Source of the DNA: Obrimoposthia wandeli
Taxonomy: Eukaryota
NCBI GenBank assembly: GCA_977020255.1
Contig: CDROCS010005962.1
Span: forward strand, 1-64,000
Reading direction: 5' to 3'
Length of the DNA stretch: 64,000 bases
Made by a program: the position numbers and the translations under genes
Notes under the pieces: model-generated
The model's input: the letters and a program-made list of their open reading frames with translations, nothing else
The model's database searches: none
What the model was told of the DNA's origin: nothing
In this document: piece by piece, positions 7,346-62,813 of the stretch
How the letters are laid out: each line of letters starts with the position of its first letter
Position numbering within the stretch: position 1 is the first letter of the stretch

Positions 7346-7521
7346 GAGGCTAGAAAGTTACTCCAAAGTGGAAAATAACTGATGATTTTTGTGTTCATAC
7401 AGCCCGTAATACTCATTTTCTAGTGAAGTATTCCTCAGATTTCACGTGGTAACGCAATTTGAGGCTTAATTTTTAATAAATTCTGAGACTGTTTTTTCTA
7501 AAATAGAAATTCTACAGGCTC
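7346..7521. mobile_element. Small non-autonomous inverted-repeat element (GAGGCT..ATTCTACAGGCTC family), copy A
   Basis: 7364-7447 aligns with 62711-62795. The right end reverse-complements to GAGCCTGTAGAATTT, matching GAGGCTGTATAATTT at 62693 in 13 of 15 positions. Confidence 0.55.
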
Positions 7522-7543
7522 GTTAGCTTGCATTGGAGTTTTT

Positions 7544-8623
7544 ATGAATCATAGAATTACGGGGTTTGATCTTGCTAGAGCGTTAGCAATTTTCGGAATG
7601 GTTATTGTTAATTTTAAAATAGCTATGAATGCTGATACGGGCAGCCAATTGTTAATGAGCTTTGCGCACATGTTTGAAGGGCGATCTTCTGCTTTGTTTG
7701 TTATTCTTGCTGGTGTTGGAATCACCTTCATGACTAACAAGGCAAGAATATCTTCTAACAGTATATCTATTTATAAAGGTCGTATATCACTAATGAAACG
7801 TGGTTTATTACTGATATTTATAGGGCTTTTATATACGCCAATCTGGGCAGCAGACATCCTACATTTTTACGGGTTCTATTTCTTAATTGCCTCTGTTGTT
7901 TTTATGTTTAATGACAGGGCACTTCTACTAGTATCAACGATTATAATGCTAGCATTTCCTAGCCTAATGTTGTTTTTTAACTACGAACAAAATTGGAATT
8001 GGATATCATTGACCTATGAAAACCTTTGGTCGCTTGATGGAATGGTTAGGCATATACTATTTAACGGTTTTCACCCCATATTTCCTTGGGCTGCCTTTTT
8101 AATATTCGGCATGTGGTTGGGTAGGCAAGACCTATCTCAAAAGGCAATAAGAAAAAGATTTCTTTTAAGTTCTATAGTGTCTTTGATTGTTATCGAGAGC
8201 TTGTTTTATATAATAAAACTAAGCCTCGGAGATGGTGCTGCACTGGAAATGACAAATGCTGAGGTGGAATTTCTATTTTCGACTTCCATTATTCCCCCCT
8301 TACCTCAATACATTATTTCAGCAGGAAGCTCCGCTGTAATTGTGTTAATAGCTTGCTTATATTTTTCTGATAAGTTTCCAAAAAACAACGTACAGAAGTG
8401 GTTATGCCAGACAGGGCAATTGTCTTTAACCCTTTATGTTGCTCATGTTATTTTAGGTATGGGGACTCTTGAATCTATGGGGTTGCTAGTAAACCAAACA
8501 ATTGACTTTTCATTATTTAGCGCATTAATATTTTGTGTTTGTGGAATTGCTTTTAGTGTTATTTGGCTTAAATATTTCAAAACTGGGCCTTTAGAATGGC
8601 TTTTCCGTAAAATTGCTAGCTAA
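7544..8623 (+). CDS. DUF418 (YeiB-like) integral membrane protein
   Basis: RITGFDLARALAIFGM, LFVILAGVG, ILHFYG, GQLSLTLYVAH and GPLEWLFR motifs; multiple TMs. Confidence 0.85.
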   Translation: MNHRITGFDLARALAIFGMVIVNFKIAMNADTGSQLLMSFAHMFEGRSSALFVILAGVGITFMTNKARISSNSISIYKGRISLMKRGLLLIFIGLLYTPIWAADILHFYGFYFLIASVVFMFNDRALLLVSTIIMLAFPSLMLFFNYEQNWNWISLTYENLWSLDGMVRHILFNGFHPIFPWAAFLIFGMWLGRQDLSQKAIRKRFLLSSIVSLIVIESLFYIIKLSLGDGAALEMTNAEVEFLFSTSIIPPLPQYIISAGSSAVIVLIACLYFSDKFPKNNVQKWLCQTGQLSLTLYVAHVILGMGTLESMGLLVNQTIDFSLFSALIFCVCGIAFSVIWLKYFKTGPLEWLFRKIAS

Positions 8624-8680
8624 CATCACTTAAACAGGGCAAATAACAGCTTGGTCAGGTTAGCTGGCTGTTGCTCCTGA
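8618..8680 (+). other. Left half of an attC-like site closing the DUF418 cassette
   Basis: AGCTAAC (8618-8624, containing the stop codon) is the exact complement of GTTAGCT (7522-7528). The following sequence resembles the attC-like site at 62601. Confidence 0.55.
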
Positions 8681-8687
8681 GACGTTG

Positions 8688-9121
8688 GTGCGTTAAGTGA
8701 AGCTTGATGCATCTTGCAGGGGTAAGTCCCTGTCAGGTAAGGTTTAACCAACCACCTGTATCGAGTGTTTCGCCTTTTGCGAAGTGTGAGATTAGCAAGT
8801 GCTTTTCAGCAGTGAGGGCTGCATGACACGAACAATATTGGTGAAGCGTACACAGAGAATTATACCCAAACCTGAGGGATTGTTGTGGCCTTGACGTGCT
8901 GGTATCGCTCCGATAAGTTTTAGGTCTGACTGACGAGGTTTGTAAGCTTATCGAAGGCCAGGCAAAGCAAGCATTATTCATGAAAGTGAGCGGGTAGGTT
9001 GTGGCGAGTCAACACAGTTTTTAAGCCGTGGTTTGGGTATAAAGAGATGTATTGAGAACTTGAGAGATCCAAAGCTGTTCCATAAGGACAGGTAGTGAAA
9101 CTTAGCCAAAAGAATAGCTTT
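8688..9121 (+). mobile_element. Group II intron 5' remnant (domains I-II only, no RT, no DV/DVI)
   Basis: Starts GTGCG. Contains the CAGGG-GTAAGT-CCCTG hairpin, GAAGCGTACACAG and GAGAACTTGAGAGATCC, then a DII-like stem AAAGCTGTTC/GAATAGCTTT, after which similarity stops. Confidence 0.62.
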
Positions 9122-9423
9122 TTCATTTATAGTTTCATCCGCTTTATGGTTGAACGTATAACGTTGTTAATGGCTTCTTCGCAAGCAAGAATTGACCATA
9201 GTCATTTATAAAGTATCAAAAATTCCACGGGCTTCTTAGCGTTCATTGAGTGGTTCGGTTGCACGAGCTCAAATTTTGCTAACCATCATTATTTGTAACC
9301 ACTATTTGCAAGCATTATGTACCACTAAAACATGCCACTAACACATTTTTACGATGCCATTACGTAATGTTACTTATTTGGTGGTGAATGGTGATTACAT
9401 TGCCCAGTAGATAGTTTACAATT

Positions 9424-9442: not shown

Positions 9443-9465
9443 TAATAATTTTTAAGGCTGTAAGA

Positions 9466-15886: not shown

Positions 15887-18800
15887 TCAATAGTAATCAC
15901 TCGCACCTGCGGCGATACATTTATCACGGTCTTCCTTCATGGCTTTAGCCGTTAAGGCGATAATAGGTAATTTTGTAAATTGCGGCTGTTTGCGAATTTT
16001 CTGGGTGGTTTCGTATCCATCCATAACAGGCATCATGATGTCCATTAAGACTAAGTCAACCAATGGATTTTTGTTCAAAAGCGCTAAAGCAACCTCCCCA
16101 TTTTCAGCAGCGAGTACTTCAATGCCTTTTTCTTCCAAAATTTCAGAAATAGCAAAAATATTCCTTATATCATCATCAACGACTAATATTTTTTTGCCCT
16201 TAAATACTTTTTCTACATCATTAAGGTCATGAATTATTTTTTGTTTATTCTGAGGCAATTTTTCAATAATTCGATGTAAAAATAGAGCGGTTTCATCTAA
16301 TAGGCGTTCTTCTGAATCAACACCCTTAATGATGATAGAATTCGAATATTTATGCAGTTGTTTATGTTCTTCTTTACTAAGGTCTTTACCGGTATAAATA
16401 ATGATGGGAGGAATTCTAAGGTTTTTCTCCAATGCTAATTTTTCCAACATTTCAATCCCTGACATGCCTTGCAAGTTTAAATCTAAAATAACACAATCAA
16501 AGTTTTCAGAGAGTAGTGCCTTAAACCCTTCATCGGCTGTTAGGGCCGCAGTAATTTTAACGTCACCGTTTCCTATCATCTCTTTTATCGCTATTTGAGA
16601 AGACTCATTATCTTCAATAATTAACAAATCTTTAACCGCTTTATTGCTCAAATTAATTAGCTTATTTAAGGTTTTATCTAATTGGTCTTGCGTAACGGGT
16701 TTGGAAACAAATCCAATAGCACCTCGGTTTTCCGCATTTTGATTTTTATCATCTGCAGACATAATGTGAATTGGAATATGACGTGTTTTTTGATTGCCTT
16801 TTAAGGCATTCAAAACTGACCAGCCATCAATTCCGGGAAGGTTGATATCTAATATAATGGCATCTGGCTGAATTTGGGTTGCTAGGGTTAAGCCTTCTTC
16901 ACCCGTAGACGTTGCTATACATATAAAACCTTGTTCGCGGCCTTGGCTTACTAGTATTTGCGCAAACATGGAGTCGTCTTCAATCACCAACATGATTTTT
17001 TTACTGTTCGACAAATTGTCTTGATCTAATATTAGTCCACGGTCATCCTCAACGTGATAATCTATGGGGAGAATAAAGGTTGTGTTTTGTTTTATCACTT
17101 CAACTTCGACGATATCAGCACTGCCCGTTGTACTTTTATTACTTGTCGACATGTTAGCTCTGTGACTGAACAACTCTGCTTGTGTGCCGCGTTTTTCTCG
17201 GTCAAAAAGAATGGTAAAAGTAAATGTTGAGCCCTTATCCACTTCACTTTGCAGTTGAATATCTCCGCCCAATAATTTTGTTAATTCTCGAGAAATAGAT
17301 AAACCTAGTCCGGTACCACCAAATTTTCTTGCAGTTCCTCCTTCAGCTTGCTGAAATGCTTCAAAAACCATTTTTTGTTTATCTTTTGTAATACCTATTC
17401 CAGTGTCGGTGACGGAAATGGAGAGAAAGTTTGAAGGGCTTAAATCGCTTGTGGAAGCGTTGTTGTTAGTCGTCAGACTATTAAAGTTGACGCAAATACT
17501 ACCAACCTCAGTAAATTTGATTGCGTTTGATAGGAGATTTTTTAAAACCTGTTCAAAACGCTTTTGATCCGTATATATAATATCAGGTAGGCTAGGGTCG
17601 ATATTGATGATGAATTCTAAACTTTTCTCTTTCATCATATGGCTGAAGTTGCGTTCCATGCTTTCTGCCACATTGGCAATAGCAACAGGCGTTATTTCAA
17701 GTTCCATCATGCCGGCTTCAATTTTAGATAGATCAAGAATTTCATTAATTAATACCAATAAATCTTGTCCACCTTGATGAACAATGCTAGCAGACTGAAC
17801 TTGCTTCGAGGTTAAATTACCCTCTTTATTTTTTGATAGACTATTAGAAAGCAACAGCATGCTGTTCAACGGTGTACGTAATTCATGGGACATATTAGCT
17901 AAAAATTCAGACTTGTATTTACTGGAAATGGTTAATTCTTTTGCTTTTTTTTCTACCTCTTCACTTTTTTTGATAATTTCTACTTTTTGTATCTCTAGGT
18001 CGTCATTCGCAAACCGCAACTGTTCTGTTTGTTCGGCCAAGCTTTCTGATTTTTCTTCTAGTTCTTCGTTGCTTGCTCTCAATTCTTCTGATTGGTTTTC
18101 TAATTCTTCCGCTTGTCGTTGGCTTTCTTCTAAAAGCACTTTCATTTCATTGGCTGATGTCGCTGCATTGAAGTTAATTGAAAGGGTTTCGCGTATCGTC
18201 GCTAGTAATTCCATTTCGGTATCTGAAAATTCTTTAAACGAGCCCAGTTCAATGACTCCTCTTAATATACCGTCACTCATAAAAGGGGAGACCACCACAT
18301 TACGAGGTACAGCATCGCCTATGGCAGAGCCAATACGTGTGTAATTGTCAGGAACATTAGTGATAGAGATAACTTCCTGCTCGAACGCAGCTTGCCCAAC
18401 TAAACCTTCTCCCATTTGAATGCGTTCATTTAAGTTTTTTCGTTTTGAAAAGGCATAACTTCCGGTAAGTATTAGATCATTTGATTGTGTATCTTTTAGG
18501 TATAAAGCGCCAATTTGCGCACCAAGATATTTTGCCAAATAGGTGATGATATTTCTTGACAGTGTTGTTTCATCTAACACACCACGCATTTGTGCATTTA
18601 CTTCATTTTGTCCTGTTTTAAGCCAATCTTGCTTTTTATTTTCAATGTTCAGGTGGCGTAAAGTATCCGTCATTTTCGCCATCGCGATGCCCAATATATC
18701 GTCGTCACTACTTGGGATAATTTGAGCACTGAAGTCACCATCAGAAATCTGATTAGCTTGGGCAGAAATAGTTTTGACTAGTTCAGTGTTTACACCAATA

Positions 18801-20350
18801 ATTTGTTCTGCTCTGGTTTTTTCTTCGATTAAGTGTAATTCAATATTTTTTTTCTCTGTAATATCGAATCGAAAAGATACAAAACCACTAATTTCACCTT
18901 CGCTATCAAAGCGAGGATATAACGTACTATTGACCCAATAAAAACTACCATCTTTGGCTTTATTCTTAATTTCACCTATCCACACATCGCCTCGTTTAAT
19001 GGTATCCCATACACTTTTAAAAAACTTTTTAGGATGTTCGCCTGAGTTGAGTATTCGATGATCTTTGCCGATCAGCTCTTCAGAACTATATTGCGAAATA
19101 GCTTCAAAATTTTGGTTTACTCGAGTTATTCTGCCTCTGTTATCGGTTTCTGAAATTAAAGCCGTTGCGTCTAAGGCGTTTGTTAATTCTGCAAGTTCCT
19201 TATATTGGCGTTTCTGCTCTATATTCGCCTGTTCAGATCTTTTTGTTTCTTCAATTAAATTTAATTCAATATTTTTCTGTTTAGTAATATCGAATCGAAA
19301 AGATACAAAACCACTAATTTCACCTTCTGTATCAAAGCGAGGATATAACGTACTATTGACCCAATAATAACTACCATCTTTGGCTTTGTTTTTAATTTCG
19401 CCTATCCACACATCGCCTCGTTTAATGGTATCCCAGACATTTTTAAAGAACGCTTTAGGGTGTTCGCCTGAGTTTAGTATTCTATGATCTTTGCCAATAA
19501 GTTCTTCAGAACTATATTGCGAAATAGCTTCAAAATTTTGGTTTACTCGGGTTATTCTCCCTAGGCTGTCGGTTTCTGAAATTAAGGCGGTTGCATCTAG
19601 AGCATTGGTTAACTCTGCAAGTTCTTTATATTGACGTTTCTGTTCAAGGCTCGCTTGTTCGGATCTGCCTTTTTCTTCAAGTAAATTCAATTCAATATTT
19701 TTTTGTTGGGTAATATCAAATCGAAAAGACATAAAACCGCTAATTTCACCTTCGGTATCAAACCGAGGATATAACGTGGTATTAACCCAATAATAACTAC
19801 CATCTTTGGCTTTGTTTTTAATTTCACCTATCCAAACATCGCCTCGTTTAATAGTACCCCAGACATTTTTAAAGAACGCTTTAGGGTGTTCGCCTGAGTT
19901 TAGTATTCTATGATCTTTGCCAATAAGTTCCTCTGAACTGTATTGAGAAATAGCTTCAAAGTTTTGGTTTACTCGGGTTATTCTACCTTTATTATCCGTT
20001 TCTGAAATTAAGGCCGTTGTGTTAAGGGCGCTCATTAATTCATCAAAATCATTATATCGGCGCGTCTGTTTAAAAGTATCAGCTATTTTCGCTATGGCGA
20101 TACCTAGTTCGTCTTTGTTGCTACGAGGTTTTATATTGTTGATGTAATTACCTTCAGCGAGCAACTTAACGTGGTTAGTAATCTCTTTAAAGGAAGACTT
20201 AAGTTGAGTTATCAACAAAAAAGTTTGCTCAAATTCACTAACGTCTTTAGGAGTCTGCTTAATAGATAGATCACCAGATATTAGATCGCTAAGCGATTTA
20301 TTTATCCTTGTTATTAAGTCTGTTTCTTTTTTTAACATCGCGTTTTCCAT
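15887..20350 (-). CDS. Soluble hybrid histidine kinase (HAMP-3xPAS-HAMP-GAF-coiled coil-HisKA-HATPase-3xREC), C-terminus disrupted
   Basis: H-box ANMSHELRTPLN, DTGIG and GGTGLGL boxes, three REC Asp motifs, no TM segment. Confidence 0.9.
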   Translation of the reverse strand: MENAMLKKETDLITRINKSLSDLISGDLSIKQTPKDVSEFEQTFLLITQLKSSFKEITNHVKLLAEGNYINNIKPRSNKDELGIAIAKIADTFKQTRRYNDFDELMSALNTTALISETDNKGRITRVNQNFEAISQYSSEELIGKDHRILNSGEHPKAFFKNVWGTIKRGDVWIGEIKNKAKDGSYYWVNTTLYPRFDTEGEISGFMSFRFDITQQKNIELNLLEEKGRSEQASLEQKRQYKELAELTNALDATALISETDSLGRITRVNQNFEAISQYSSEELIGKDHRILNSGEHPKAFFKNVWDTIKRGDVWIGEIKNKAKDGSYYWVNSTLYPRFDTEGEISGFVSFRFDITKQKNIELNLIEETKRSEQANIEQKRQYKELAELTNALDATALISETDNRGRITRVNQNFEAISQYSSEELIGKDHRILNSGEHPKKFFKSVWDTIKRGDVWIGEIKNKAKDGSFYWVNSTLYPRFDSEGEISGFVSFRFDITEKKNIELHLIEEKTRAEQIIGVNTELVKTISAQANQISDGDFSAQIIPSSDDDILGIAMAKMTDTLRHLNIENKKQDWLKTGQNEVNAQMRGVLDETTLSRNIITYLAKYLGAQIGALYLKDTQSNDLILTGSYAFSKRKNLNERIQMGEGLVGQAAFEQEVISITNVPDNYTRIGSAIGDAVPRNVVVSPFMSDGILRGVIELGSFKEFSDTEMELLATIRETLSINFNAATSANEMKVLLEESQRQAEELENQSEELRASNEELEEKSESLAEQTEQLRFANDDLEIQKVEIIKKSEEVEKKAKELTISSKYKSEFLANMSHELRTPLNSMLLLSNSLSKNKEGNLTSKQVQSASIVHQGGQDLLVLINEILDLSKIEAGMMELEITPVAIANVAESMERNFSHMMKEKSLEFIINIDPSLPDIIYTDQKRFEQVLKNLLSNAIKFTEVGSICVNFNSLTTNNNASTSDLSPSNFLSISVTDTGIGITKDKQKMVFEAFQQAEGGTARKFGGTGLGLSISRELTKLLGGDIQLQSEVDKGSTFTFTILFDREKRGTQAELFSHRANMSTSNKSTTGSADIVEVEVIKQNTTFILPIDYHVEDDRGLILDQDNLSNSKKIMLVIEDDSMFAQILVSQGREQGFICIATSTGEEGLTLATQIQPDAIILDINLPGIDGWSVLNALKGNQKTRHIPIHIMSADDKNQNAENRGAIGFVSKPVTQDQLDKTLNKLINLSNKAVKDLLIIEDNESSQIAIKEMIGNGDVKITAALTADEGFKALLSENFDCVILDLNLQGMSGIEMLEKLALEKNLRIPPIIIYTGKDLSKEEHKQLHKYSNSIIIKGVDSEERLLDETALFLHRIIEKLPQNKQKIIHDLNDVEKVFKGKKILVVDDDIRNIFAISEILEEKGIEVLAAENGEVALALLNKNPLVDLVLMDIMMPVMDGYETTQKIRKQPQFTKLPIIALTAKAMKEDRDKCIAAGASDYY
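18800..20030 (-). repeat. Three tandem ~426-bp PAS-module repeats inside the kinase
   Basis: ACTCG(G/A)GTTATTCT recurs at 19119, 19545 and 19971, a period of 426 bp (142 aa). Confidence 0.9.
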
Positions 20351-33624: not shown

Positions 33625-33750
33625 CTATTCACATTGATTTCTCAATTATGAAATTGTTTGACATAATTTGAAACAGTTTCGCTAAAATTAAAGCCGACAA
33701 AACAGTTACAATTGTTAACTATATAACAATAATAAAAACATTTACTTATT

Positions 33751-35808
33751 ATGAATTTAAAAGTCTCTTTAAAAATTAAAACTGGGTTAGTTAGCCTTTT
33801 AATTTTGCCTTATTTAGACACTGTTGCTAACGAATTATCACCTGCTAATAATACATCAAGCTACCAGCCATCTTTTTTCATTCAATATCAACCACAAAAT
33901 GCATACGACATGATCGAGAGGCTACCTGGCTTTTCATTTGACGGCGGATCGGATGAGCGTGGTTTTGGTGGCAATGCAGGTAACGTGCTAATTGACGGAT
34001 CACGTCCAACATCAAAATCGGGTGGGTTACAAGGAGCGTTGACTAGAATACCTGCCGCACAAGTCGATAGAATTGAAATTATTCGTGGTGGTCAAGGCTC
34101 AAGCGACACATCAGGGCAGTCAATTATTGCTAATATTATTCGAAAAAAAGACATCACAACAGGGACTTGGGCACTAAAATTAAGACGAGCACCTGATGGT
34201 GACTTAAGGCCTAACATTGAAGCAGCGGTCACCACAACTATAGGTCAATGGGAAACTAATTTTGATACTGATATTGGCGGTTGGGTAGGGTACAGAACCG
34301 CCGTTGTAGAAAATAAAGACAGTCAAGGTCAACTAACAAAAAGTGCCAATGAAATACTCGATGAAAAAAATACTTGGGGTTATATTAACGGGCAAGGTTT
34401 CAGAGAATATACAGAAGGCCAGCTCACCCTAAATGGACGTATTGGTGGTGAAAAATGGCAAGGAGAAACGACAAGAGATATTTATCACGCGACATCATCA
34501 AAACAAGAACTTGATGCATTTTGGCAACTTGATGAAGATAATACCAACAAAGAATTAGAATTAGGCATTGACTGGCTTGGTAATGACGATGAATGGAAAT
34601 GGCATGTTTTAGGCTTAGCCGTTGTGAAGCATCAAAACTATGAAAACAGTTTTCATCAAGAAGACTATGCGCAGCCCAGTTTATACGACAGTTATTTTCA
34701 ACAAAAGCGGCTTAAAACAGAATATATTTTAAGGAATACTTACGGGAAAGTAGGTAGTGATAAATTTAGACCTGAGTATGGCTTTGAAATAGCGAATAAT
34801 AAACTAGATACAGAACTAGATTCTGTAGAGAACAACCAGCAGCAACAATTGAGTGCAGCCAATGTCGTTGCTGAAGAAATCAGAGCAGAGTTATTTGTAA
34901 CCTTTGCCTATAGTGCAACAGAAGACTTATCAATTGATGGCGGTTTAACTGCAGAGTTTTCTACCATTGAAGTTTCCGGTGATGCTTCAAATGAACAGAA
35001 TTTCACGTTTTTAAAACCCAGATTATCAGCCAGCTATAACGTTAACTCTGCATTGCAATTAAGTGTTTTAGCCCAGCATAAAGTTGGGCAACTTAATTTT
35101 AACGATTTTGCTGCAAGTAATGACGCTGCTGATGATAGAAATACTGCTGGTAATCCAAATTTGACCCCTGATCAAACGACTGAACTGAGTACTCGACTTG
35201 ATTGGGGCTTTAGTGAAAAAGGAAGTTTATCAGTCAGACTATTTCATGAGTGGCGAAAAGATATCCTTGAATACATTATTTTACCTACAGAAAATGGCGA
35301 TGTTAGTCATGGCTTAGGTAATGCTGGTGATGCTACATTCTGGGGCTTTGAAATGGCCTTAAACTTACCATTAGATAACATTATAGATAATGGTTTATTG
35401 TTAATATCCTATGAATATTATGATTCTGAATATTTTGGCTCTGTCATCAATGGTAATAGAATTATAAGTGACTATACACCTAAAGAATTTAATATTGAGT
35501 TCAGGCAAGACCTCGTTGAACAAAAAATAGCCTGGGGTGTCGAATTTATTAGCCACTTTGTTGAAAGTGATTACCTAGTTGATGAATTACATACATTTGA
35601 GGGTAATAATCGTTTAGAAGCCTTTATTGAAACAACATACTTTGATGGACTGAAAATTCAACTTCAAGTTGAGCATTTAAATACGGGTGAGTACACACGC
35701 TCAAGATTTATCTTTGAAAATGATCGTTCAGGCGATTATCTTGGTAGTCAGGTTGCTTCTAGAAAAAGAGAGCCAGAGTTAAAGCTCTCTGTGTGGGGTA
35801 CTTTTTAA
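33751..35808 (+). CDS. TonB-dependent receptor
   Basis: Plug motif NVLIDG..RIEIIRG, NPNLTPD, C-terminal Phe. Confidence 0.85.
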   Translation: MNLKVSLKIKTGLVSLLILPYLDTVANELSPANNTSSYQPSFFIQYQPQNAYDMIERLPGFSFDGGSDERGFGGNAGNVLIDGSRPTSKSGGLQGALTRIPAAQVDRIEIIRGGQGSSDTSGQSIIANIIRKKDITTGTWALKLRRAPDGDLRPNIEAAVTTTIGQWETNFDTDIGGWVGYRTAVVENKDSQGQLTKSANEILDEKNTWGYINGQGFREYTEGQLTLNGRIGGEKWQGETTRDIYHATSSKQELDAFWQLDEDNTNKELELGIDWLGNDDEWKWHVLGLAVVKHQNYENSFHQEDYAQPSLYDSYFQQKRLKTEYILRNTYGKVGSDKFRPEYGFEIANNKLDTELDSVENNQQQQLSAANVVAEEIRAELFVTFAYSATEDLSIDGGLTAEFSTIEVSGDASNEQNFTFLKPRLSASYNVNSALQLSVLAQHKVGQLNFNDFAASNDAADDRNTAGNPNLTPDQTTELSTRLDWGFSEKGSLSVRLFHEWRKDILEYIILPTENGDVSHGLGNAGDATFWGFEMALNLPLDNIIDNGLLLISYEYYDSEYFGSVINGNRIISDYTPKEFNIEFRQDLVEQKIAWGVEFISHFVESDYLVDELHTFEGNNRLEAFIETTYFDGLKIQLQVEHLNTGEYTRSRFIFENDRSGDYLGSQVASRKREPELKLSVWGTF

Positions 35809-35959
35809 AACATGCATTACTTATAACGGCTATTTTTGTGAAATTAACAGCAGAATTAATATGATACTCACTCTAGATTCTATAAAGTTTAAAGCGGGTG
35901 TCTCTTTAACTTGCTATTCTACAGGTTCGTTATACGACTAATCAAATTAAGGTGTCAAG

Positions 35960-37096
35960 ATGAACCAATACAAGAATGTTCAATATTTTCTATTTGTTTT
36001 AGGTGTTTCGTTTAGTCTTATTTGCCAAGCTAAAACAATCGATATAGGCAGTACAACCTTTTCACACACTCTACTAAACGTAGGGGCAGGAAAATCGTCA
36101 ATATCCGTTTTTGATTTCAATTCAGATGGCTATGAGGATGTAATTATTTCTAATTATGCAGACAATAACATTGTCATATATCAGGGGGATGGCAAAGGTA
36201 ATTTAACCGAGACTAGTCGTTATGCAGCCGGAAAAAACCCTACAGATATTTCCTCTGCTGACATAAATGGAGATGGAAACATTGATGTGGCTATAGCTAA
36301 TCACGAAACTTCGTATGTTACGTTGCTTTATGGTGATGGTCGAGGTGGCTTCACCCCTGGACCTCATTCACCGCTCAATACTGAAGTGAATCCTCATTTA
36401 CATGAGGTTCAATTGGAAGATCTTGATGGAGACAATAAAGTTGATCTAATTGTAGACAGTCGAACTCATGAAGGTTTGCGTGTTCTAAAGGGGCTAGGCA
36501 ATGGCCGTTTCCATACACCAGGAAAACTTATCAACGTTGGTGGCGATCCCTATCTTGGATTTGCCATTGGCGATTTAAATGGTGACGGAAAGTTGGATTT
36601 AGTTACACCGAATCAACGCGATATTGGCATAATTCTCAATACCAATTCTGAAAAGCTAACGTTTTCCTTGAAAAAGTTGCCATCATCCGAATCTCCATTT
36701 GCAGTTGAATTGGCTGAAATGACTGGAGATGGTAAAGCCGATTTAATTGTTGCTGCAAACGGAAATCATATAAGTATTATTCCTGGAGATGGCAAAGGTA
36801 ATTTCCTAGAAGAAAAGAAGACAACAATCAGAACAGATGCTGGTGCGAAACAAATAGCTGTGGGAGATATTAATGGTGACGGAATTGAAGATGTTTTAAT
36901 CAGTAATTGGTCTGGAAAATTACTCGCCGTTTTAGGTAATAAGACGACTTTTGAAACTATTAGTTTTGAGCATCCAAGTATTCCTAACACGTGGGGAGTT
37001 GTATTGGCTGATCTAAATAAAGATGGTAAAAGCGATTTTATAATAGCTGATGGCAACACTAAATTAGCTGCTGTGTATATTAGTCAAGACAAGTGA
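35960..37096 (+). CDS. Secreted FG-GAP/VCBS repeat protein
   Basis: Signal peptide and seven D(F/I/L)NxDG.xD-type repeats, consistent with a beta-propeller. Confidence 0.85.
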   Translation: MNQYKNVQYFLFVLGVSFSLICQAKTIDIGSTTFSHTLLNVGAGKSSISVFDFNSDGYEDVIISNYADNNIVIYQGDGKGNLTETSRYAAGKNPTDISSADINGDGNIDVAIANHETSYVTLLYGDGRGGFTPGPHSPLNTEVNPHLHEVQLEDLDGDNKVDLIVDSRTHEGLRVLKGLGNGRFHTPGKLINVGGDPYLGFAIGDLNGDGKLDLVTPNQRDIGIILNTNSEKLTFSLKKLPSSESPFAVELAEMTGDGKADLIVAANGNHISIIPGDGKGNFLEEKKTTIRTDAGAKQIAVGDINGDGIEDVLISNWSGKLLAVLGNKTTFETISFEHPSIPNTWGVVLADLNKDGKSDFIIADGNTKLAAVYISQDK

Positions 37097-37104
37097 TAAC
37101 CATC

Positions 37105-37191
37105 GTATAACAACACGCCATGAGGTGGACAACTAGTAAAATTTAGCTATTTATTGCAAATTTTAACAGCGGCGAACCTCTACGTTTAAGT
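37105..37191 (+). other. Degenerate attC-like site closing the FG-GAP cassette
   Basis: GTATAAC (37105-37111) is the exact complement of GTTATAC (35929-35935). Internal pairings GAGGT/ACCTC and AAAATTT/AAATTTT. Confidence 0.5.
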
Positions 37192-37278
37192 ACTTCTAAA
37201 TATTTAGATTCATCATAATGTTTCTCAAAAACTTAAATCTATAAAAAAATTAATAAGACACCAACTCTAAATTATTAC

Positions 37279-37305
37279 TATAGTATTTTTTTTATGTGCC
37301 GATAA
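37279..37305 (+). promoter_or_regulatory. Sigma-28 (FliA) promoter
   Basis: TATAGTAT-N11-GCCGATAA versus the consensus TAAAGTTT-N11-GCCGATAA. Confidence 0.65.
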
Positions 37306-37360
37306 AGCTATGTGCCGATAAAGCAAAGATAAACATAGGAAATAACAAGGAAAGCAAAAA

Positions 37361-37804
37361 ATGGAATTACATGTTAATAAAATGCAAGTAAGTATTAAGC
37401 AATCACCGCAAGAAATTGCTATGGCATCGAAACAAGCCATTATTAATGTAGAAAGTGCAACTCCCAAAGTTGCTGGAAGTTTAGAAGAAGATACAGTCAC
37501 CATTTCTAATGCCGGCCATGAAAAAAATGTTAACGAGAAAAACCAAGCGGCATTTCGTAAAATGATGGGCCACGAAGAAGTAGAAAGTAGTAAGAAAAGT
37601 GATGGTAAGGCAGACATAGATGATAAAATTGCTGAGTTGAAAGAAAAAATTGATAAGTTGATGGAAGAGCTTAGCCAACTTCGTGGTAAATCAGATGAAG
37701 AATCAGAGCAAAAAATCAAAGTATTAGAAATGGAATTAGCCTCCTTAAATGCACAAATGCTACAATTAGTGGAGCAAAAACTGGAATCAAGCAAAAAGAA
37801 ATAA
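37361..37804 (+). CDS. FlxA-like coiled-coil protein
   Basis: DTVTISNAG motif, C-terminal coiled coil and an upstream sigma-28 promoter. Confidence 0.55.
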   Translation: MELHVNKMQVSIKQSPQEIAMASKQAIINVESATPKVAGSLEEDTVTISNAGHEKNVNEKNQAAFRKMMGHEEVESSKKSDGKADIDDKIAELKEKIDKLMEELSQLRGKSDEESEQKIKVLEMELASLNAQMLQLVEQKLESSKKK

Positions 37805-37906
37805 GCAGCTAATTAACCACTAATTAGCAAGACTCTCAGGCTAAATGAATAAGTTTTGCCTTTGTACTAAGCCAAAATAACAACATTATTTTAACGTAGA
37901 TGAGTT

Positions 37907-38034
37907 ATGGTCACAGCAATAAAATAACAAATCAGTGCAGTTGATGCCCCTTATTATCATTGTGTTGTCCATTGCGTCCGACGCGCGTTTTTATCTGGTA
38001 AAGATACATTGTCAGGTAAGGTATGAGCCCCGTT
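37907..38034 (+). pseudogene. 5' remnant of a REP-associated (Y1/HUH) tyrosine transposase
   Basis: MVTAIK*QISAVDAPYYHCVVHCVRRAFLSGKD resembles the PYYHCxSRCVRRAFLCG N-terminus of this family; internal stop, then truncation. Confidence 0.7.
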
Positions 38035-38100
38035 GAGGCTTTTTAGAATGAGTGTTATGTAAAAGATAAAATTCATACGGATATTTAAAGAGTGTATCCT

Positions 38101-38135
38101 TTAACTCTTAACTCTTAACTCTTAACTCTTAACTC
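38101..38135. repeat. Heptamer microsatellite (TTAACTC)x5
   Basis: Read directly from the sequence. Confidence 0.95.
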
Positions 38136-38192
38136 TAATCGAGATCAAAGTCGAATACAGTAATTAGCAGTGTGTGATGTTTTGCTATTTTA

Positions 38193-38810
38193 TTATCCCC
38201 TCAAGCCCGCAAAGCGAGAAACCAATAACATTAAAGCTTCCTCTCTTTTTAATAAATTAGAATCGAAATCAATGCGAACATATTCATCATGAGTTACAAA
38301 CTTTCTTTCATTCCACATTTGAAATACCCACTGTAATAAACCTCCTCCAACTGACTCTTTCGCAACTAGAATTTGGTTAACGTAATACCCTTCTTCATCA
38401 TAAGTAATTTCTTTTTCACTTTGGCTATTATTTATAGCAATGTGCCCCGAACAAACTTTTAAACGCTGTCCATATCCAATAAGTGAATAATCACAGTCTA
38501 GTTTTTTTATTAGAATTTTATCTTCTCTTACTTCTTCTTTATTGTTCATATGAAAATACTTGAATTCGAATCTTTCCAATGTGTCTGTAAAATCATAAAA
38601 AACTAAATTTTCTACAAGCATCAAAAGCTCTTTACCATCAAATATCTTATAAAAGTGATCACTTCCAAGGGGCTTATAAACTTTTAAGTTAGAAGGACTA
38701 TTTTCCCATAATGCTAATTCACCAATATCCCTGCTATCGAGGGGACGTTGGTTTTTTATCATGATATATGAATTCATTTCCTTATATCTCAATCTAATGT
38801 TAACTGCCAA
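38193..38810 (-). CDS. Hypothetical AT-rich protein
   Basis: 205-aa ORF; likely start at 38777 after AAGGAA. No recognisable motif. Confidence 0.55.
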   Translation of the reverse strand: MAVNIRLRYKEMNSYIMIKNQRPLDSRDIGELALWENSPSNLKVYKPLGSDHFYKIFDGKELLMLVENLVFYDFTDTLERFEFKYFHMNNKEEVREDKILIKKLDCDYSLIGYGQRLKVCSGHIAINNSQSEKEITYDEEGYYVNQILVAKESVGGGLLQWVFQMWNERKFVTHDEYVRIDFDSNLLKREEALMLLVSRFAGLRG

Positions 38811-38895
38811 TCACCGAAAATGTATGAAGGTGTTGATGCCCTAATATTTAGAGAGCTGCTTGCATTATTTTTAAAAATATAACGGCCTATTTATA

Positions 38896-39161
38896 TATAC
38901 CCAAGCCACTTAAAAATGCAGTTTCAGAGCTAAGCTAGGAAATCAGGTCAAGGCGCAGCACGAAGACAATGGTTATTCCCTTATCAAGTGCTGCAACGCA
39001 GAGATGGTTTTCTAGCTTAGCTCCCTTCGGGCAAGGCGATAAAGGGTCATCTCCGGCGTTATTGATTTCGACAATGGAACAACCATTTTCTTCAATCAAT
39101 GCCTTGGTGCTAACCCTTTCTCGACTTGCTGAATCCTGCATCTTCAAGTGGCTTGGGTATA
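38896..39161. mobile_element. 266-bp MITE of the TATACCCAAGCCACT family
   Basis: Terminal inverted repeats TATACCCAAGCCACTTAAAAATGCAG and TATACCCAAGCCACTTGAAGATGCAG, with an internal hairpin. Confidence 0.85.
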
Positions 39162-40054
39162 GTTGATGTGGTTTGAATAATTTGGTTTCTGAGCCATTTA
39201 TTTGCGGGATCAAAGTCGACATTGGTATGCCAATATAAATGTACGTCAATATCATGCAAGCGAACAGGTAAAGGAAATACGATCAAATCAAGTACCTGAC
39301 TGTACATTTTTGCTGTTGTTTCCGTTAACGTCAGTAGCATATTGTTGTTGGCGATGACCTGACATGCAGAAAATGCATGTTGACAGCGCAAGCCTACTTT
39401 TCGTTGTAAGCCTAAACGGCCTAATTCAAAATCTTCAATACTAGCGCCTACAGTACGTGATGATACCAACACATGTTCTTGCGCTAAGTAGGTATCTAAA
39501 TCGAGTGTCGTATTGACTACTGGATGATTCTTACGTGCTAATACAACGAGTTTATTTTGATCTAACTGCGTATGTAAAATATTGTCACTGACCGGCACTA
39601 AGGTGTCTATGGCTAAATCAATATCACCACTGGCGAGTTTATTTTCTAACTCGCTGCGGTTAACACGTCGGCTGCTTTGTAAATTAATTAATGGCGCTTC
39701 TTTTTTAATACGCTGCATTAATGGCGGTAAGTAGGACGCTTCTAATGCACCATGCAAAGAGATATTAAAGTGATTACGGGAAACCAGTGGCTCAAATTGC
39801 CTCGACTGAGCCAAACATACTTTTAATTGCTGAAGGGCTTCACGTACATCGGCGATAACATTGTTGGCCACCGGCGTTGGGCGCATTTCATTGCCTTGAC
39901 GAATAAATAAGGCATCATCAAAATTATGTCGAAGTTTACTTAATGAGTGACTAACAGCAGGTTGCGATAAATTAAGTGCAGACGCTGCTTTGGTAATGTT
40001 TCCTTCACAATAAATTGCTTCAAATACTACAAATAGATTCAAATCTACTTTCAT
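39110..40054 (-). CDS. LysR-family transcriptional regulator
   Basis: DLNLFVVFEAI..TKAASALNLSQPAVSHSLSKLR helix-turn-helix, LFIR and DIDLAI motifs. Confidence 0.93.
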   Translation of the reverse strand: MKVDLNLFVVFEAIYCEGNITKAASALNLSQPAVSHSLSKLRHNFDDALFIRQGNEMRPTPVANNVIADVREALQQLKVCLAQSRQFEPLVSRNHFNISLHGALEASYLPPLMQRIKKEAPLINLQSSRRVNRSELENKLASGDIDLAIDTLVPVSDNILHTQLDQNKLVVLARKNHPVVNTTLDLDTYLAQEHVLVSSRTVGASIEDFELGRLGLQRKVGLRCQHAFSACQVIANNNMLLTLTETTAKMYSQVLDLIVFPLPVRLHDIDVHLYWHTNVDFDPANKWLRNQIIQTTSTIPKPLEDAGFSKSRKG

Positions 40055-40190
40055 ACGTTCTCCATAGTGCTAATGATGTGTCTAGAATATTTCTAGCAAT
40101 GCTGCTAGCAGTAAGGCACTAGCTAATTTGTTTTTATATGAGTCATTATTTTATTCTTATTTTTAACATTATTCTTATTATGGATAGTTA

Positions 40191-40237
40191 GTTATAAGAA
40201 CTATTCATTTGTTTAATTTAATGGCTAGACCTAGCAT
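40191..40237 (+). promoter_or_regulatory. LysR-type box plus sigma-70 promoter, copy 1
   Basis: 29-bp GTTATAAGAACTATTCATTTGTTTAATTT identical to 43418-43446; TTGTTT-N17-TAGCAT. Confidence 0.75.
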
Positions 40238-40425
40238 AGTCAAGTAGTACAAAAATTGTGCTGCTGAAATCGTTAACATTGCGTTAACGGTAATAATTAA
40301 CTACAGCGCTGGCAGTAAAGGGCTGTAGTTAAAACAATAATTCATGTTCAAACAATGTATTTGAACAGGATCACATTAGATGAATACGTGTATTTTGGTA
40401 TTTATAGCAAACTCGGGGATTCAAG

Positions 40426-42882
40426 ATGAATAAAAGATCAGCAACAAGATATTTTAAACGCGCGTTACTCGTTTCAGCAATATTAAGTGCAATTAATGCG
40501 AGTGCAGTTAATGCTCAAGACGCTAATACATCGGCGCAAGACGATGATAAAGATATAGAAAGAATAATGGTGACTGCCTCTAAACGGCTTAAAGGTTTGC
40601 AGGAATCTCCTGTTGCCGTAACTGTGGTCAGTGGGCTTGCTGTTGAGCAAGCGAAAGTTTTAGACATGAACGATCTGCAAACCCTTGTACCTACCTTACG
40701 TGTTACTCCTTTACAGCGCTCGGTGAACACTAACTTTGCTATTCGAGGTTTTGGTAATGGCACCAATAACATCGGTATTGAACCGTCAGTTGGTATTTTT
40801 ATCGATGGTGTTTATCGCTCACGTGCTGCGGCTCAAATTGGTGATTTACCGAGATTACAACAAATAGAAGTACTCAGTGGTCCGCAAAGCACGCTATTTG
40901 GCAAAAATGCTTCTGCGGGGGTTATAAGTGTTCGCACCATGGCACCATCACATGATCTAGAAGGTAAGATTGAAGTAGGCGCTGGTAATTTCAATCAAAA
41001 GTTAGTGAAAGGCCATATTACTAATGGTGTGACAGACGAGTTAGCCCTGAGTTTGTCGGGTGGTTTTAATAAGCGCGATGGCTACACTGATAGCGTTGTT
41101 GGATTGAATCAAATTAATAATCGTGACCGTTGGAATATTCGCGGACAAGCATTATATGAACCCACCGCTGATGTGACATTACGCTTTATTGCCGATTACA
41201 GTGAAGTAGACGAAGCCTGTTGTACCGCTGCTGATGTTATAAATGGCCCAACAACCGGTGCTGTTAGAGCATTAGGGGGTATTGTACTTGATGATAGTGA
41301 TGCCTTTATTTATAAATCATCACTTAATATTGACCCAGACAACACCATAGAAGACAGTGGTGTTTCTGTGCAGCTTGATGTTGATTTTGATGGTTTTTCT
41401 TTTACCTCAATCAGTGCTCTGCGTCGAAATGACTCAAAATTCTTAAACGATGTTGATTATACCTCGCTCGATATTTTGCAAGAAGGTGGACACACTAAAA
41501 TTGATACCTTTACGCAAGAGTTCCGTTTAACCTCTACAGGAAAGCAAAGATTAGAGTGGATGGTGGGTGCGTTTATCTTCCAAGAAGAAGTAGCAACGGG
41601 TGACACGCTATATTATGGCGAGGACATTCGTAATTACTTTGATGTGTTGATGGCTGCAGGGGGTGCTGCTGGTTTATTATCCGGTATTGAAGGCGTTTAC
41701 GGTCTTGCGCCAGGTACGTTTTTTTCGAATGAATCTTCAATAAATTCAGAGTTTACTCAGGATAACGACGCGTATTCAATATTTGCTAATTTTGATTATC
41801 ATATCTCAGACGACTTAACCGCAATTTTTGGGGTAAGTTACACCAAAGATGAGAAAAAAATTACGGCGCAACAAATCAATACTGATGTACTTTCTGGCCT
41901 TGATATTGACACTGAGTTAACCGCTTTTAATGTGCCATTATCTTTTATCCCGACGCTAGCTCCTGCCATTCCAACCTTAAAAAGCCTACAATTTTTACCT
42001 CCGATGCCAAGCTTACCTAACTCAGTTGAACAACATAAAAGTAATGACAGTAAAACTACATGGTCAATGCGCTTAGCGTATGAGGTGAATGATAATATTA
42101 ATATTTTTGCCTCTGCAGCAACGGGTTTTAAAGCATCATCATGGAATTTAGGACGAAATAGTAATCCTTTCGTTGCTGACCAAACGGCATTAGAAAATGC
42201 CGGTCTTGCACTAGCGAATCAAACTTATGGAGGTCGCTTTGCTTCGCCAGAGGAAGCTAAGGTTTATGAGCTTGGCCTTAAAGCACGCTTTGATAAAGCT
42301 GCCTTTAACGTAACAATATTTGACCAAACTATCGAAGGCTTTCAATCCTCAATATTTATTGGTACCGGTTATGTACTAGCAAATGCTGGCAAACAAAGCA
42401 CCAAAGGGTTGGAGTTTGACTCCAGCTACAAGCCAACAGAAAACTGGTCTTTTACCTTAGCCGGTACTTTTCTTGACCCTGTTTACGACTCATTTAAAGG
42501 TGCTACAGGGCTTGATGGCCCCGTTGATTTATCGGGTAAAAAGCCAGCCGGTATTCATGAACGTAGTATAACAGCAGGTATTACTTACAGTTATGAACTA
42601 GAAAACGGTATTTATGGTTATGTCAGAAGTGATTACATCTACGAGAGTGAAGTCTTTCTTGCGGAAAATGTACCTGAGTCTCTAACACGTGAAGTTGGTA
42701 CATTAAATGCGACAGCGGGGCTAAACTTTGACAATGGACTGCACGTTCAACTGTGGGTGCGTAACTTAAATAACGACGAGTATCTATTATCATCATTTCC
42801 ACCGCCAATTCAGGCGGGTAGTTATAATGGTTACCCGAGTCAGCCTCGTACCTATGGTGCTTCAGTATCTTACGAGTTTTAA
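40426..42882 (+). CDS. TonB-dependent receptor
   Basis: IMVTASKR TonB-box region, IRGFG..SVGIFIDGVY and IEVLSGPQSTLFGKNASAG plug, PRTYG..YEF C-terminus. Confidence 0.93.
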   Translation: MNKRSATRYFKRALLVSAILSAINASAVNAQDANTSAQDDDKDIERIMVTASKRLKGLQESPVAVTVVSGLAVEQAKVLDMNDLQTLVPTLRVTPLQRSVNTNFAIRGFGNGTNNIGIEPSVGIFIDGVYRSRAAAQIGDLPRLQQIEVLSGPQSTLFGKNASAGVISVRTMAPSHDLEGKIEVGAGNFNQKLVKGHITNGVTDELALSLSGGFNKRDGYTDSVVGLNQINNRDRWNIRGQALYEPTADVTLRFIADYSEVDEACCTAADVINGPTTGAVRALGGIVLDDSDAFIYKSSLNIDPDNTIEDSGVSVQLDVDFDGFSFTSISALRRNDSKFLNDVDYTSLDILQEGGHTKIDTFTQEFRLTSTGKQRLEWMVGAFIFQEEVATGDTLYYGEDIRNYFDVLMAAGGAAGLLSGIEGVYGLAPGTFFSNESSINSEFTQDNDAYSIFANFDYHISDDLTAIFGVSYTKDEKKITAQQINTDVLSGLDIDTELTAFNVPLSFIPTLAPAIPTLKSLQFLPPMPSLPNSVEQHKSNDSKTTWSMRLAYEVNDNINIFASAATGFKASSWNLGRNSNPFVADQTALENAGLALANQTYGGRFASPEEAKVYELGLKARFDKAAFNVTIFDQTIEGFQSSIFIGTGYVLANAGKQSTKGLEFDSSYKPTENWSFTLAGTFLDPVYDSFKGATGLDGPVDLSGKKPAGIHERSITAGITYSYELENGIYGYVRSDYIYESEVFLAENVPESLTREVGTLNATAGLNFDNGLHVQLWVRNLNNDEYLLSSFPPPIQAGSYNGYPSQPRTYGASVSYEF

Positions 42883-60577: not shown

Positions 60578-60668
60578 CTTAGCTTAGCTTAGAAATAGGC
60601 AAAGTAAACCACTCAAACGCATAGCAATAATATTAGGATTACAACTAACAATAATAAAATGATGGGGA

Positions 60669-61580
60669 ATGACGATGGAGTTTTTAAGAACTGACGACAG
60701 TTGCTTTGCAGATCTAGATGGTTATAGCTTTGCACCGAACTATTTATTGGTTGATGATACTGAAGGCGCGCAACTACGAGTACATTATGTTGATGAAGGC
60801 CCCAAAGATGCCACGCCAATATTATTAATGCATGGCGAACCATCATGGGGCTATCTTTATCGTAAAATGATCCCGCCACTTGTCGCGGCTGGCTATCGTG
60901 TTATTGCCCCTGATTTAATTGGCTTTGGCCGTTCAGACAAACCAACCAAACGCACCGATTACACTTACCAACGCCATGTTGACTGGATGGGCAGTGTGCT
61001 TGAGCAATTACAATTAATCGACATTACGTTATTTTGTCAAGATTGGGGCGGGCTAATTGGTTTGCGTTTAGTCGCTGAAAAAAGTGATCGCTTTGCGCGT
61101 GTTGTTGCGGCAAACACTATGTTGCCCACAGGAGAATATTCACCCGGTGAAGCCTTTAGTCAATGGCAGAAATACTCTCAAGAAGTTGCTGAATTTCCGG
61201 CCGGCGGCATTATCAATGGCGGTACCACTTCAGAGTTAACCCCTGAATCTATTGCTGCCTACAATGCGCCTTATCCAGAAGAAAAATACAAAGAGGGCGC
61301 TCGACAGTTTCCATTATTGGTGCCAACTAGTCTAGATGATCCCGCCTCTAAAAGTAATATTGCCGCTTGGCAGGTGTTATCAAAATGGCAAAAACCTTTT
61401 TTGACTGCATTTAGTGACAACGATCCGATCACCTCTGGTGGCGATAAAATAATGCAAAAGCTTATTCCAGGCACCAAAGGGCAAGCTCATACTACGATTG
61501 TAAATGGCGGACATTTCTTACAAGAAGATCAAGGGGAGAAATTAGCCGAGGTGATTATTGATTTTATTGTGGCTAGCTAA
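60669..61580 (+). CDS. Haloalkane dehalogenase (alpha/beta hydrolase, DhlA-like)
   Basis: HGEPSW, QDWGG nucleophile motif, F.DND.IT and GHFLQED. Confidence 0.85.
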   Translation: MTMEFLRTDDSCFADLDGYSFAPNYLLVDDTEGAQLRVHYVDEGPKDATPILLMHGEPSWGYLYRKMIPPLVAAGYRVIAPDLIGFGRSDKPTKRTDYTYQRHVDWMGSVLEQLQLIDITLFCQDWGGLIGLRLVAEKSDRFARVVAANTMLPTGEYSPGEAFSQWQKYSQEVAEFPAGGIINGGTTSELTPESIAAYNAPYPEEKYKEGARQFPLLVPTSLDDPASKSNIAAWQVLSKWQKPFLTAFSDNDPITSGGDKIMQKLIPGTKGQAHTTIVNGGHFLQEDQGEKLAEVIIDFIVAS

Positions 61581-61917
61581 TGGTTAAATCTAGAAGATAG
61601 CGCAGACTTTTTATGCTGATGTTACATTTCTATCAACGTTAAGATGAGTGAAAATTACTTAATCGGTTCCTCTTCTCCCATGATTCCAAGTGTAGGATTT
61701 TGTTGCCCATCATTAGATGGAACATGGTCATCTTCTATTCAAAAGTTTGACTCCTTCAAGGGCAGTAATATCTATATTTCGATGATATTGGTCATTTTAC
61801 TCAAACTCAGGGGTATGAAGTTATGGGTTAATGTATTAACATATTATGAAACGGACTTATCTCTACTGAGCCTGAAATACTGAAGTGTTAATTATCTAGC
61901 ATGGAGTTTGATGAAAA

Positions 61918-62606
61918 ATGAAAATATACAAATTTCGAGAAAAAGAGGATTATATTTTCTACCTTTCAGAGATTATTTCAGACACTGTAAAATATAAAGA
62001 AAGGCTTAATCGTTATCTAACTGAAATTAGCGATTTAGTCGCTTTAAACCCCGACGCCAAAGTCATTGATAGTACTTATTGGGAGTATATGGGAACTTCG
62101 GACAGTGATGGCAATAGCCATATAACCATATTACACTTATTTAATAAACGTTGTTATGATGAATCCAAAAGCGCATTTTCGTACAATTTACGAAGCTGCT
62201 GATACGCCATGCCTAGGTACTAAATTTGGGTATAAAACGAAAGAAGCCCAAATGTCAAATAAGCTTTAACCAACCACCTGTAGAAATCGAGTGTTACCCA
62301 GAATCTTTATTGACCAATAAACGAGAGATATTTGAAATTACAGGGGTTGAGATTGATAAATATAAAGAAACAGTACCATTGGAAGTGTATAAGTACTTCG
62401 AAATTGAGTATTTAACTTCACTAAAAACTGAATTAGCAGACGTTGTTTCGAGTGTGGAGGTTTTAGAGAGCCGAATGATGCAAGATTACTTAAAATTGGC
62501 AGGTGTCCATTTTCAGGTATCTTTGATCTACTTAAAGGTTAAGCCATATAAAATCATGGATGTAGTACAAGCTTCTCTAAATACCCAAACTAAAAAGCAA
62601 CTATAA
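61918..62606 (+). pseudogene. AT-rich hypothetical gene split into two ORFs
   Basis: ORFs 61918..62202 and 62226..62606 are colinear and end directly in an attC-like site. Confidence 0.5.
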
Positions 62607-62692
62607 GTCATTTAAAAGGACAAAAAACAGTTGGCTTTTGCTCCTTCGTCGCTTATTTTAGCTAACAATTTTTTGTCTCTTATTTAGGCGTT
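62601..62692 (+). other. attC-like site
   Basis: TAAGTCATTTAAAAGGACAAAAAACAGTTGGC..AGCTAACAATTTTTTGTCTCTTATTTAGGCGTT is an imperfect palindrome ending in GCGTT. Confidence 0.7.
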
Positions 62693-62813
62693 GAGGCTGT
62701 ATAATTTATTCAAAGTGGAAAATGACGGATGAAATTTATGTTCGAAGAGCCTGTAAAAGTCATTTTATAGTAGAATATTGCCTCAGATTTCACGTAGAAA
62801 TTACACAGACACC
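62693..62813. mobile_element. GAGGCTGTA-family element, copy B (internally shortened)
   Basis: Begins right after GTT, aligns with 7364-7447, and ends TAGAAATTACACAGACAC (compare TAGAAATTCTACAGGCTC in copy A). Confidence 0.55.

Follow-up and report, generated by a model that had tools for sequence, protein, structure and literature searches.

A gene-less 177-bp repeat as the probable short partner of an IS1182-family insertion sequence on the crossover triplet of integron attC sites

What are the short repeats that stand at GTT triplets in front of cassette-like genes, and what brought them there? The question arises from the first 64 kb (hereafter the window) of a 144-kb bacterial contig, CDROCS010005962.1 (C5962), in assembly GCA_977020255.1 of Obrimoposthia wandeli, an assembly that looks and behaves like a marine metagenome (1.35 Gb, 6,912 contigs). 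Integrons are a major route of gene trading among bacteria, and their integrase exchanges strands at the GTT triplet of the R' core of a cassette's attC site. The original prediction for this DNA proposed a non-autonomous inverted-repeat element that duplicates GTT, prefers attC cores, and may help to scatter cassettes or immobilise them outside the integron. We conclude, with a probability of about 0.85, that the repeat is a gene-less miniature transposable element with inverted repeats (MITE) of 177 bp, the short partner of an insertion sequence (IS) of the IS1182 family that inserts on the crossover GTT of attC in one orientation. The non-autonomous nature, the GTT duplication and the attC preference are thereby retained from the prediction, on evidence that comes almost wholly from outside the window.

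The repeats form a genuine family with sharp borders, as had been claimed. The family profile is 177 bp long and has terminal inverted repeats of 14 bp (GAGSCTGTAGAATT), which match at 13 of 14 positions in the consensus and are flanked by GTT on each side. About 20 related places were found when the assembly was searched with the complete copy of the window (copy A; Table 1), and at least 15 full and four partial copies are present. Across these copies the family borders run from ...GGCGTT into GAGGCTGTAGAATT on the left and from AATTCTACAGGCTC into GTTA on the right; in the alignment with flanks, ...GGCGTT is followed by GAGGCTGTAGAATTA, and AGAAATTCTACAGGCTC by GTTAG, a ribosome-binding site and an open reading frame (ORF). 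The exact 14-bp end is eight times commoner in the assembly than a control pattern (32 versus 4). The MITE is short and non-coding, copy A being without any ORF of 80 aa or more, and it is present in at least 15 of the 401 sampled genomes of the GTDB family.

Within the window the 177-bp core profile (nhmmer) finds only two members, copy A and the truncated copy B. The two are colinear over 89-107 bp at 75-78% identity, where about 85 bp had been predicted, and the sequences quoted at the time are all in place. Copy A is 84-89% identical to full-length copies on other contigs. The inverted-repeat ends once ascribed to the window copies hold for the family consensus; in copy A the right repeat is intact (AATTCTACAGGCTC) and the left one has decayed to about 9 of 14 positions (GAGGCTAGAAAGTT). 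A second MITE family, shorter at 146-147 bp but sharing the terminal repeats and the flanking GTT, occurs in Colwellia, Pseudocolwellia, Motilimonas and Pseudoalteromonas.

An autonomous element with the same ends, which the original prediction had suggested seeking, was found on contig C253 of the assembly. There, a transposase gene of the IS1182 family adjoins the same right end (NF033551, E 8.8e-77 and 5.9e-63), its product matching NF033551 (IS1182) and PF13751. Pairs of the 14-bp end lie about 1.8-1.9 kb apart on this contig, and at C253:3514231 a single GTT separates the right end of a full-length element (...GAGTAATTCTACAGCCTC) from the left end of a MITE. Another IS1182 match in the assembly is enclosed by an exact pair of terminal repeats 1,798 bp apart. 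With the C253 transposase as query, 80 public loci were obtained, and in 49 of them a complete IS with the same ends is present, 1.58-1.91 kb and roughly 1.85 kb in length. The hosts are marine Gammaproteobacteria of the genera Thalassotalea, Colwellia, Cognaticolwellia, Pseudocolwellia, Psychromonas, Psychrobium, Psychrosphaera, Pseudoalteromonas, Shewanella, Marinomonas and Motilimonas. The IS consists of one ORF of 509-531 aa between 14-bp repeats, with a 3-bp duplication, and its transposase has a DDE architecture (DUF772, PF05598, E 6.4e-14; DDE_Tnp_1_6, PF13751, E 1e-30). Of the full-length copies, 48 of 49 have GTT on the left and 47 of 49 on the right; the left flank reads ...cTTAnnnnGGCGTT in nearly all, and the right flank begins GTTA. 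MITE and IS have only their first 22-27 nt and last 14 nt in common.

The left flanks of the IS reveal its target. Twenty-six of them, aligned and folded with RNAalifold, form a hairpin of 21 pairs closed by AAC...GTT, with compensatory changes at 17 of the pairs, and such a covarying hairpin is how an attC is built. From this alignment we made a covariance model of our own, distinct from that of IntegronFinder, which finds 138 sites in the public loci; with a sequence profile the number is 112, and every one of these lies on the strand of the transposase gene. Among 35 IS left ends on which the model had not been trained, 30 abut a model match that ends exactly one base before the element; likewise, of the roughly 16 MITE copies in the assembly that are informative, 11 border directly on an attC match. 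In 54 of 76 sites the variable arm finds its complement upstream; with arms swapped among sites, this number is 25 on average and 37 at most. Median best hairpin energies are -15.3 kcal/mol at insertion sites and -7.8 kcal/mol at random GTT sites, a control contaminated by attC sites of the arrays, and the covariation analysis was therefore used instead. Complementarity between the four bases after the right GTT and those before the AAC of R'' was found in 3 of 68 cases (shuffled mean 2.4), a test that was dropped because these bases come from the neighbouring cassette. The orientation of the IS is constant, with the left end against the attC and the transposase gene in the direction of the cassettes, and this is also true of some copies whose ends are perfectly symmetric. 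The predicted preference for attC cores is thus borne out by the assembly copies and by the IS copies outside the training set, but three of the four sites proposed in the window do not show it. As to the family at large, its ends are conserved and most copies do not lie away from attC or GTT.

The GTT is a 3-bp target-site duplication. Empty sites, on which part of the original prediction turned, read GGCGTT followed by A (96%) and then by G or T (n = 55), whereas in filled sites GGCGTT is followed by the element, a further GTT, A (88%) and mostly G (48%) or T (32%) (n = 52); the triplet is single when the attC is empty and flanks the element when it is filled, and must therefore have been duplicated. 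One IS (locus L138) has ATT on both sides and is inserted in an attC that ends in ATT. A filled and an empty version were found within one organism, Pseudocolwellia sp. HL-MZ7, where a 701-bp cassette is present twice at 99.86% identity, one copy following attC-GTT alone and the other attC-GTT-IS-GTT; of these two copies, one has the IS at the cassette's own attC and the other an empty site there. The same strain holds a composite-transposon-like arrangement in which a cassette lies between two directly oriented IS copies (L121:2593-5204, plus strand, and L084:340-2592), and this cassette is found elsewhere in the genome without IS copies. Elements are also stacked with a single GTT between them (C253, L085 and L090), and two tandem MITE copies exactly 3 bp apart are known from their coordinates at G225:C1:4844848-4845204. 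Such stacks fit a target that is set by the attC side and survives each insertion.

In our reading the IS, whose single gene encodes a DDE transposase, enters an attC in its 3'-terminal R' core, on the GTT, and duplicates these 3 bp, its left end facing the attC and its transposase gene pointing in the cassette direction. The MITE obeys the same insertion rules and is presumably moved in trans by that transposase, as shared ends and shared target suggest. The attC upstream of an insertion keeps its terminal GTT, so that the element would come to lie inside the unit that the integrase excises with the next cassette, and it may travel with that cassette whenever the integrase acts on the preserved upstream triplet. 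It is plausible that the element becomes the head of the next cassette in this way. The use of one orientation despite perfectly inverted ends suggests that the attC is recognised as a folded or asymmetric structure rather than as plain sequence.

Several points weigh against this reading and have to be considered. Copy A, with ATT on its left, GTT on its right and no attC match, does not by itself show the insertion rule. The attC model was made from flanks of the same IS, and the independent evidence consists of the 35 untrained sites and the assembly copies. Among attC sites with a complete 3' end in the public loci, 52 are occupied and 55 empty, figures that are biased because the loci were chosen for carrying the IS. 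The full-length pairs of C253 and the empty sites of the closest sampled relative were placed by coordinates alone. Two full-length transposases score 265.7 and 263 bits against NF033551 and the one in the assembly 267.1, slightly under the cut-off of 270, for which reason the autonomous partner is best called a divergent IS1182-family insertion sequence; the next-best family, IS5, scores 36-44 bits, and NF033551 thus fits far better than any other model. That the MITE is moved in trans, finally, is argued from the shared ends alone.

The copies in the window itself are all dead, comprising one full but decayed copy, one truncated copy and one right-end relic of 18 nt (Table 1). Of the 110 matches listed for TIGR02249, the model of the integron integrase, none falls on contig C5962 (with 83 of 115 candidates scored), in agreement with the earlier statement that the window has no integrase. 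For comparison we used the closest sampled relative (G012), whose conserved genes are 93-95% identical and which shares its GTDB family with Colwellia sp. RSH04.

Table 1. Repeats, attC sites and neighbouring genes of the window, with loci of the second MITE family
Feature	Position	Strand	Basis or remark
MITE copy A	7346-7521	+	full length, 176 bp; nhmmer E 2.6e-51 against family profile
Left flanking triplet ATT (family norm GTT)	7343-7345	+	sequence
Right flanking triplet GTT, also start of DUF418 cassette	7522-7524	+	sequence
DUF418/acyltransferase-3-like membrane protein gene	7544-8623	+	PF04235 E 4.4e-15, PF07786 E 1.4e-13
Probable attC 5' half (R''-L'') of DUF418 cassette	8620-8653	+	nhmmer attC profile positions 3-38, E 1.2, weak alone
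ORF-less group II intron 5' fragment, interrupting the attC of the DUF418 cassette	8683-9112	+	RF02005 (group-II-D1D4-6) E 1.5e-9
Strain-specific block	35910-39157	+	3,248 bp; relic, FG-GAP gene, unknown ORFs, 268-bp repeat at right edge
IS/MITE right-end relic (TATTCTACAGGTTC + GTTA)	35915-35932	+	2 mismatches to 18-mer
FG-GAP gene	35960-37096	+	PF13517 E 8.2e-55
Claimed left end GTTGAGGCT, not a family member	38032-38040	+	9-nt match only
attC ending GGCGTT	62595-62692	+	covariance model R1 66.5 bits, E 5e-15; nhmmer E 2.5e-15
MITE copy B, left 107 bp	62693-62799	+	nhmmer profile positions 1-107, E 2e-23
Inverted 5' half of second attC, in parDE unit	62848-62908	-	nhmmer positions 2-63, E 9.2e-7; covariance model E 0.0093
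parD/parE toxin-antitoxin pair, mobile cassette unit	62944-63491	+	PF03693 E 5.1e-31, PF05016 E 2.6e-16
Second, shorter MITE family	L078:1471-1616, L090:2037-2182, L101:1387-1533, L105:1802-1948, L123:1566-1711, L134:1696-1842		

Copy B is the member that displays the target. As the original prediction had recognised, it directly follows the GTT that ends an attC-like site; this is the only good attC in the window and matches the covariance model over its full length. Copy B is truncated on the right at about 62799 and joined there to the inverted half of a second attC. Units of attC plus MITE in a relative (G397) match positions 62610-62800. The parDE unit (62850-63500) recurs in other arrays of G012 and of a further relative (G338), beside an attC cluster in the former; in the latter it adjoins attC-like matches, and the gene of an integron integrase is about 9 kb away. 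The cluster at 61.9-63.5 kb as a whole is without an integrase and contains one and a half attC sites.

Copy A is followed by GTT, a ribosome-binding site and the DUF418 gene, in the order that had been described, and neither the covariance model nor the nhmmer attC profile detects an attC to its left. The DUF418 gene is a separate unit in other genomes of the GTDB family, and homologues of this unit elsewhere start exactly at 7522 (G022, query 3056), which makes this a decayed former cassette with the MITE as its head. The probable attC half of this cassette begins within the stop codon as CTAAC. The intron fragment that interrupts it begins with GTGCG and scores 39.2 bits, under the RF02005 gathering score of 49; it is a separate attC-associated mobile element, of a family that is multi-copy in Motilimonas and other genomes. 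The fragment lies on the strand of the DUF418 gene, unlike the published group IIC-attC introns, which are antisense (PMC3001079). Homology to G012 ends at 7344, just before copy A, and resumes at 9119, 76 kb further on in G012. Positions 7344 and 9119 correspond to 2136059 and 2212378 of that genome, so that 76 kb there stand against a 1.8-kb block of MITE, DUF418 gene and intron here, the product of a large insertion or deletion. Among the matches listed for G012 (150 of 2,845 candidates scored) no attC falls into these extra 76 kb that would mark them as an integron.

The site near 35916, for which a right end followed by GTT and an FG-GAP gene had been claimed, has a right-end 18-mer with two mismatches, then GTTA and the gene. 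Since only 0.06 such matches are expected by chance per window, it is taken as a real relic. From the left edge of the strain-specific block it is only 5 bp inwards; G012 matches 33626-35909 and 39158-41000 at 93-95% identity and has 117 bp between them instead of the block. Further upstream of the relic there is no similarity to the MITE or full-length IS profile, and no attC is detected to its left by the covariance model or the nhmmer attC profile. A proposed similarity to GATACTCACTCTA upstream of the relic is unsupported, the full-length IS profile finding only a MITE right end in the window. The 268-bp repeat at the right edge of the block (38894-39161) has more than 40 copies in G012 (94-97% identity) and many in G397, and looks like a separate, very active family of MITE type or of repetitive extragenic palindromic (REP) type.

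A further left-end copy that had been placed at 38032 is rejected. About 0.5 such 9-nt matches occur by chance, there are at least four mismatches to the 18-nt left end, and nhmmer gives no match to the MITE or full-length IS profile, nor does the site match the 18-mer with three mismatches or fewer. The match coincides with the end of an unrelated repeat, about 227 bp long (37822-38048), which has no Rfam match and, where a transposase remnant had been suspected, no evident transposase ORF. This repeat has several copies at about 70-78% identity in G338, G397, G225 and G324. A short tandem run of TAACTCT-like units follows at 38093-38137. Elsewhere in the window, three tandem 426-bp repeats (86-90% identical) at 18804-19955 lie inside a minus-strand ORF of 1,487 aa (15887-20350).

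The original prediction further suggested that the element may help to scatter cassettes or to immobilise them outside the integron. Cassettes could be spread round the chromosome or fixed in this manner if the element rides with the downstream cassette, or through recombination between copies. There is material in the window that invites this idea: the left end of copy A and the relic at 35915 each coincide with the left edge of DNA that is absent from G012 at that place, and the break in copy B is the joint of an inversion or deletion, beyond which lies an inverted attC half. The IS-cassette-IS arrangements of Pseudocolwellia likewise agree with it, as does the insertion geometry, which places the element within the excisable unit of the next cassette. 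G012, however, has one integrase and a single, decayed MITE copy, while its attC sites, at least 96 in number, are distributed over about 18 or more scattered clusters. In this lineage, then, scattering is independent of the MITE. Moreover, the position of the cluster at 61.9-63.5 kb is conserved in G012 and G397, with different cassettes and irrespective of whether the MITE is present, and no identical unit of MITE plus cassette was found in two different contexts. We consider a role of the element in scattering or immobilising cassettes unlikely and do not uphold this part of the prediction. The cassette landscape of G012 is in itself unusually scattered, its attC sites being spread round a chromosome of 4.7 Mb (150 of 2,845 candidates scored).

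Far less probable is a function as a conserved regulatory leader, a promoter or small RNA that was retained for expression. The MITE constantly stands in sense orientation immediately before the ribosome-binding site of a cassette, which would suit such a role, and a possible weak -35/-10 pair (TTGAGG, 17 nt, TATGAG) can be read by eye in the alignment. A scan of copy A for promoters and terminators reports none, though; the MITE has no match in Rfam and folds no better than shuffled sequences (z -1.0 and -1.6), and terminal repeats, target duplication and a full-length IS explain its placement without a regulatory role. ORF-less integron cassettes are known, and the GTT on both sides of the 177-bp unit at the exact cassette junction, in a single orientation, is cassette-like, but that the unit is such a cassette, placed by the integron integrase instead of a transposase, is the least credible alternative, as the covariance model finds no attC match inside any MITE copy where a cassette would have its own at the 3' end, the left flank is GTT where an R''/R' pair would require AAC, a DDE transposase gene lies between these same ends in 49 copies, the ATT on both sides at L138 fits a staggered cut and not a G/TT exchange, and the MITE lacks a significant fold.

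Placement by an IS1182-family transposase, the reading that we prefer, would have consequences for the view of integrons. To our knowledge, only two kinds of mobile elements home to attC, both near its 5' end and antisense to the cassettes. Our search of the open-access literature turned up neither an IS1182-type nor any other DDE element described as aimed at attC, and nothing relevant on MITEs that target it. A DDE transposon and its MITEs would here hit the exact crossover triplet, in sense orientation and across many marine genera. With somewhat less than even confidence we suggest that DDE transposons which read attC in one orientation, head the next cassette and spread by cassette exchange may form a third, mechanistically independent class of integron parasites after IS1111-attC elements and group IIC-attC introns. 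This raises the question of how a DDE transposase would read a structured recombination site and choose one orientation, whether an insertion blocks, permits or redirects cassette excision, and whether the element spreads by riding cassettes. It also matters for annotation, because cassette junctions that bear the element are easily mistaken for atypical attC sites or for conserved leaders of cassettes.

Among the known systems, the IS1182 family is a close structural match. Its characters, a single DDE transposase with DUF772 and DDE_Tnp_1_6, short terminal repeats, a short duplication and a length near 1.85 kb, are those of the IS described here. ISPse1 of Paracoccus, a member of that family, has 1,653 bp, inverted repeats matching at 16 of 16 positions and a 4-bp direct repeat (PMC3281130). 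The present element departs from the family in the duplication of 3 bp of a fixed GTT and in its strict specificity for the site and orientation of attC, a trait for which our literature search found no description in this family.

Targeting of cassette attC sites in one orientation is known from the IS1111-attC group (ISPa21, ISPst6, ISKpn4), whose members have a seekRNA-guided DEDD transposase and subterminal repeats and enter the attC close to its 5' end, in antisense orientation to the cassettes (PMC3001079, PMC11187229). By contrast, the element described here is of DDE type, has terminal repeats and a 3-bp duplication, and sits in sense orientation at the 3' GTT crossover; it thus falls outside that group as defined by a DEDD transposase, subterminal repeats and 5' antisense insertion. 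Group IIC-attC introns likewise home to attC sites, but they are retroelements, which enter the bottom strand near the 5' end, opposite to cassette transcription (PMC3001079). They lack inverted repeats and leave no target duplication. A parallel to the MITE itself is found in the integron mobilisation unit (IMU)-type and Acinetobacter MITEs that flank class 1 integrons (PMC3575428). These are similarly gene-less, short and linked to integrons, with terminal repeats and target duplications. They flank whole integrons or groups of cassettes, however, and targeting of the attC crossover is unreported for them, whereas each copy of the family described here sits on the GTT of a single attC.

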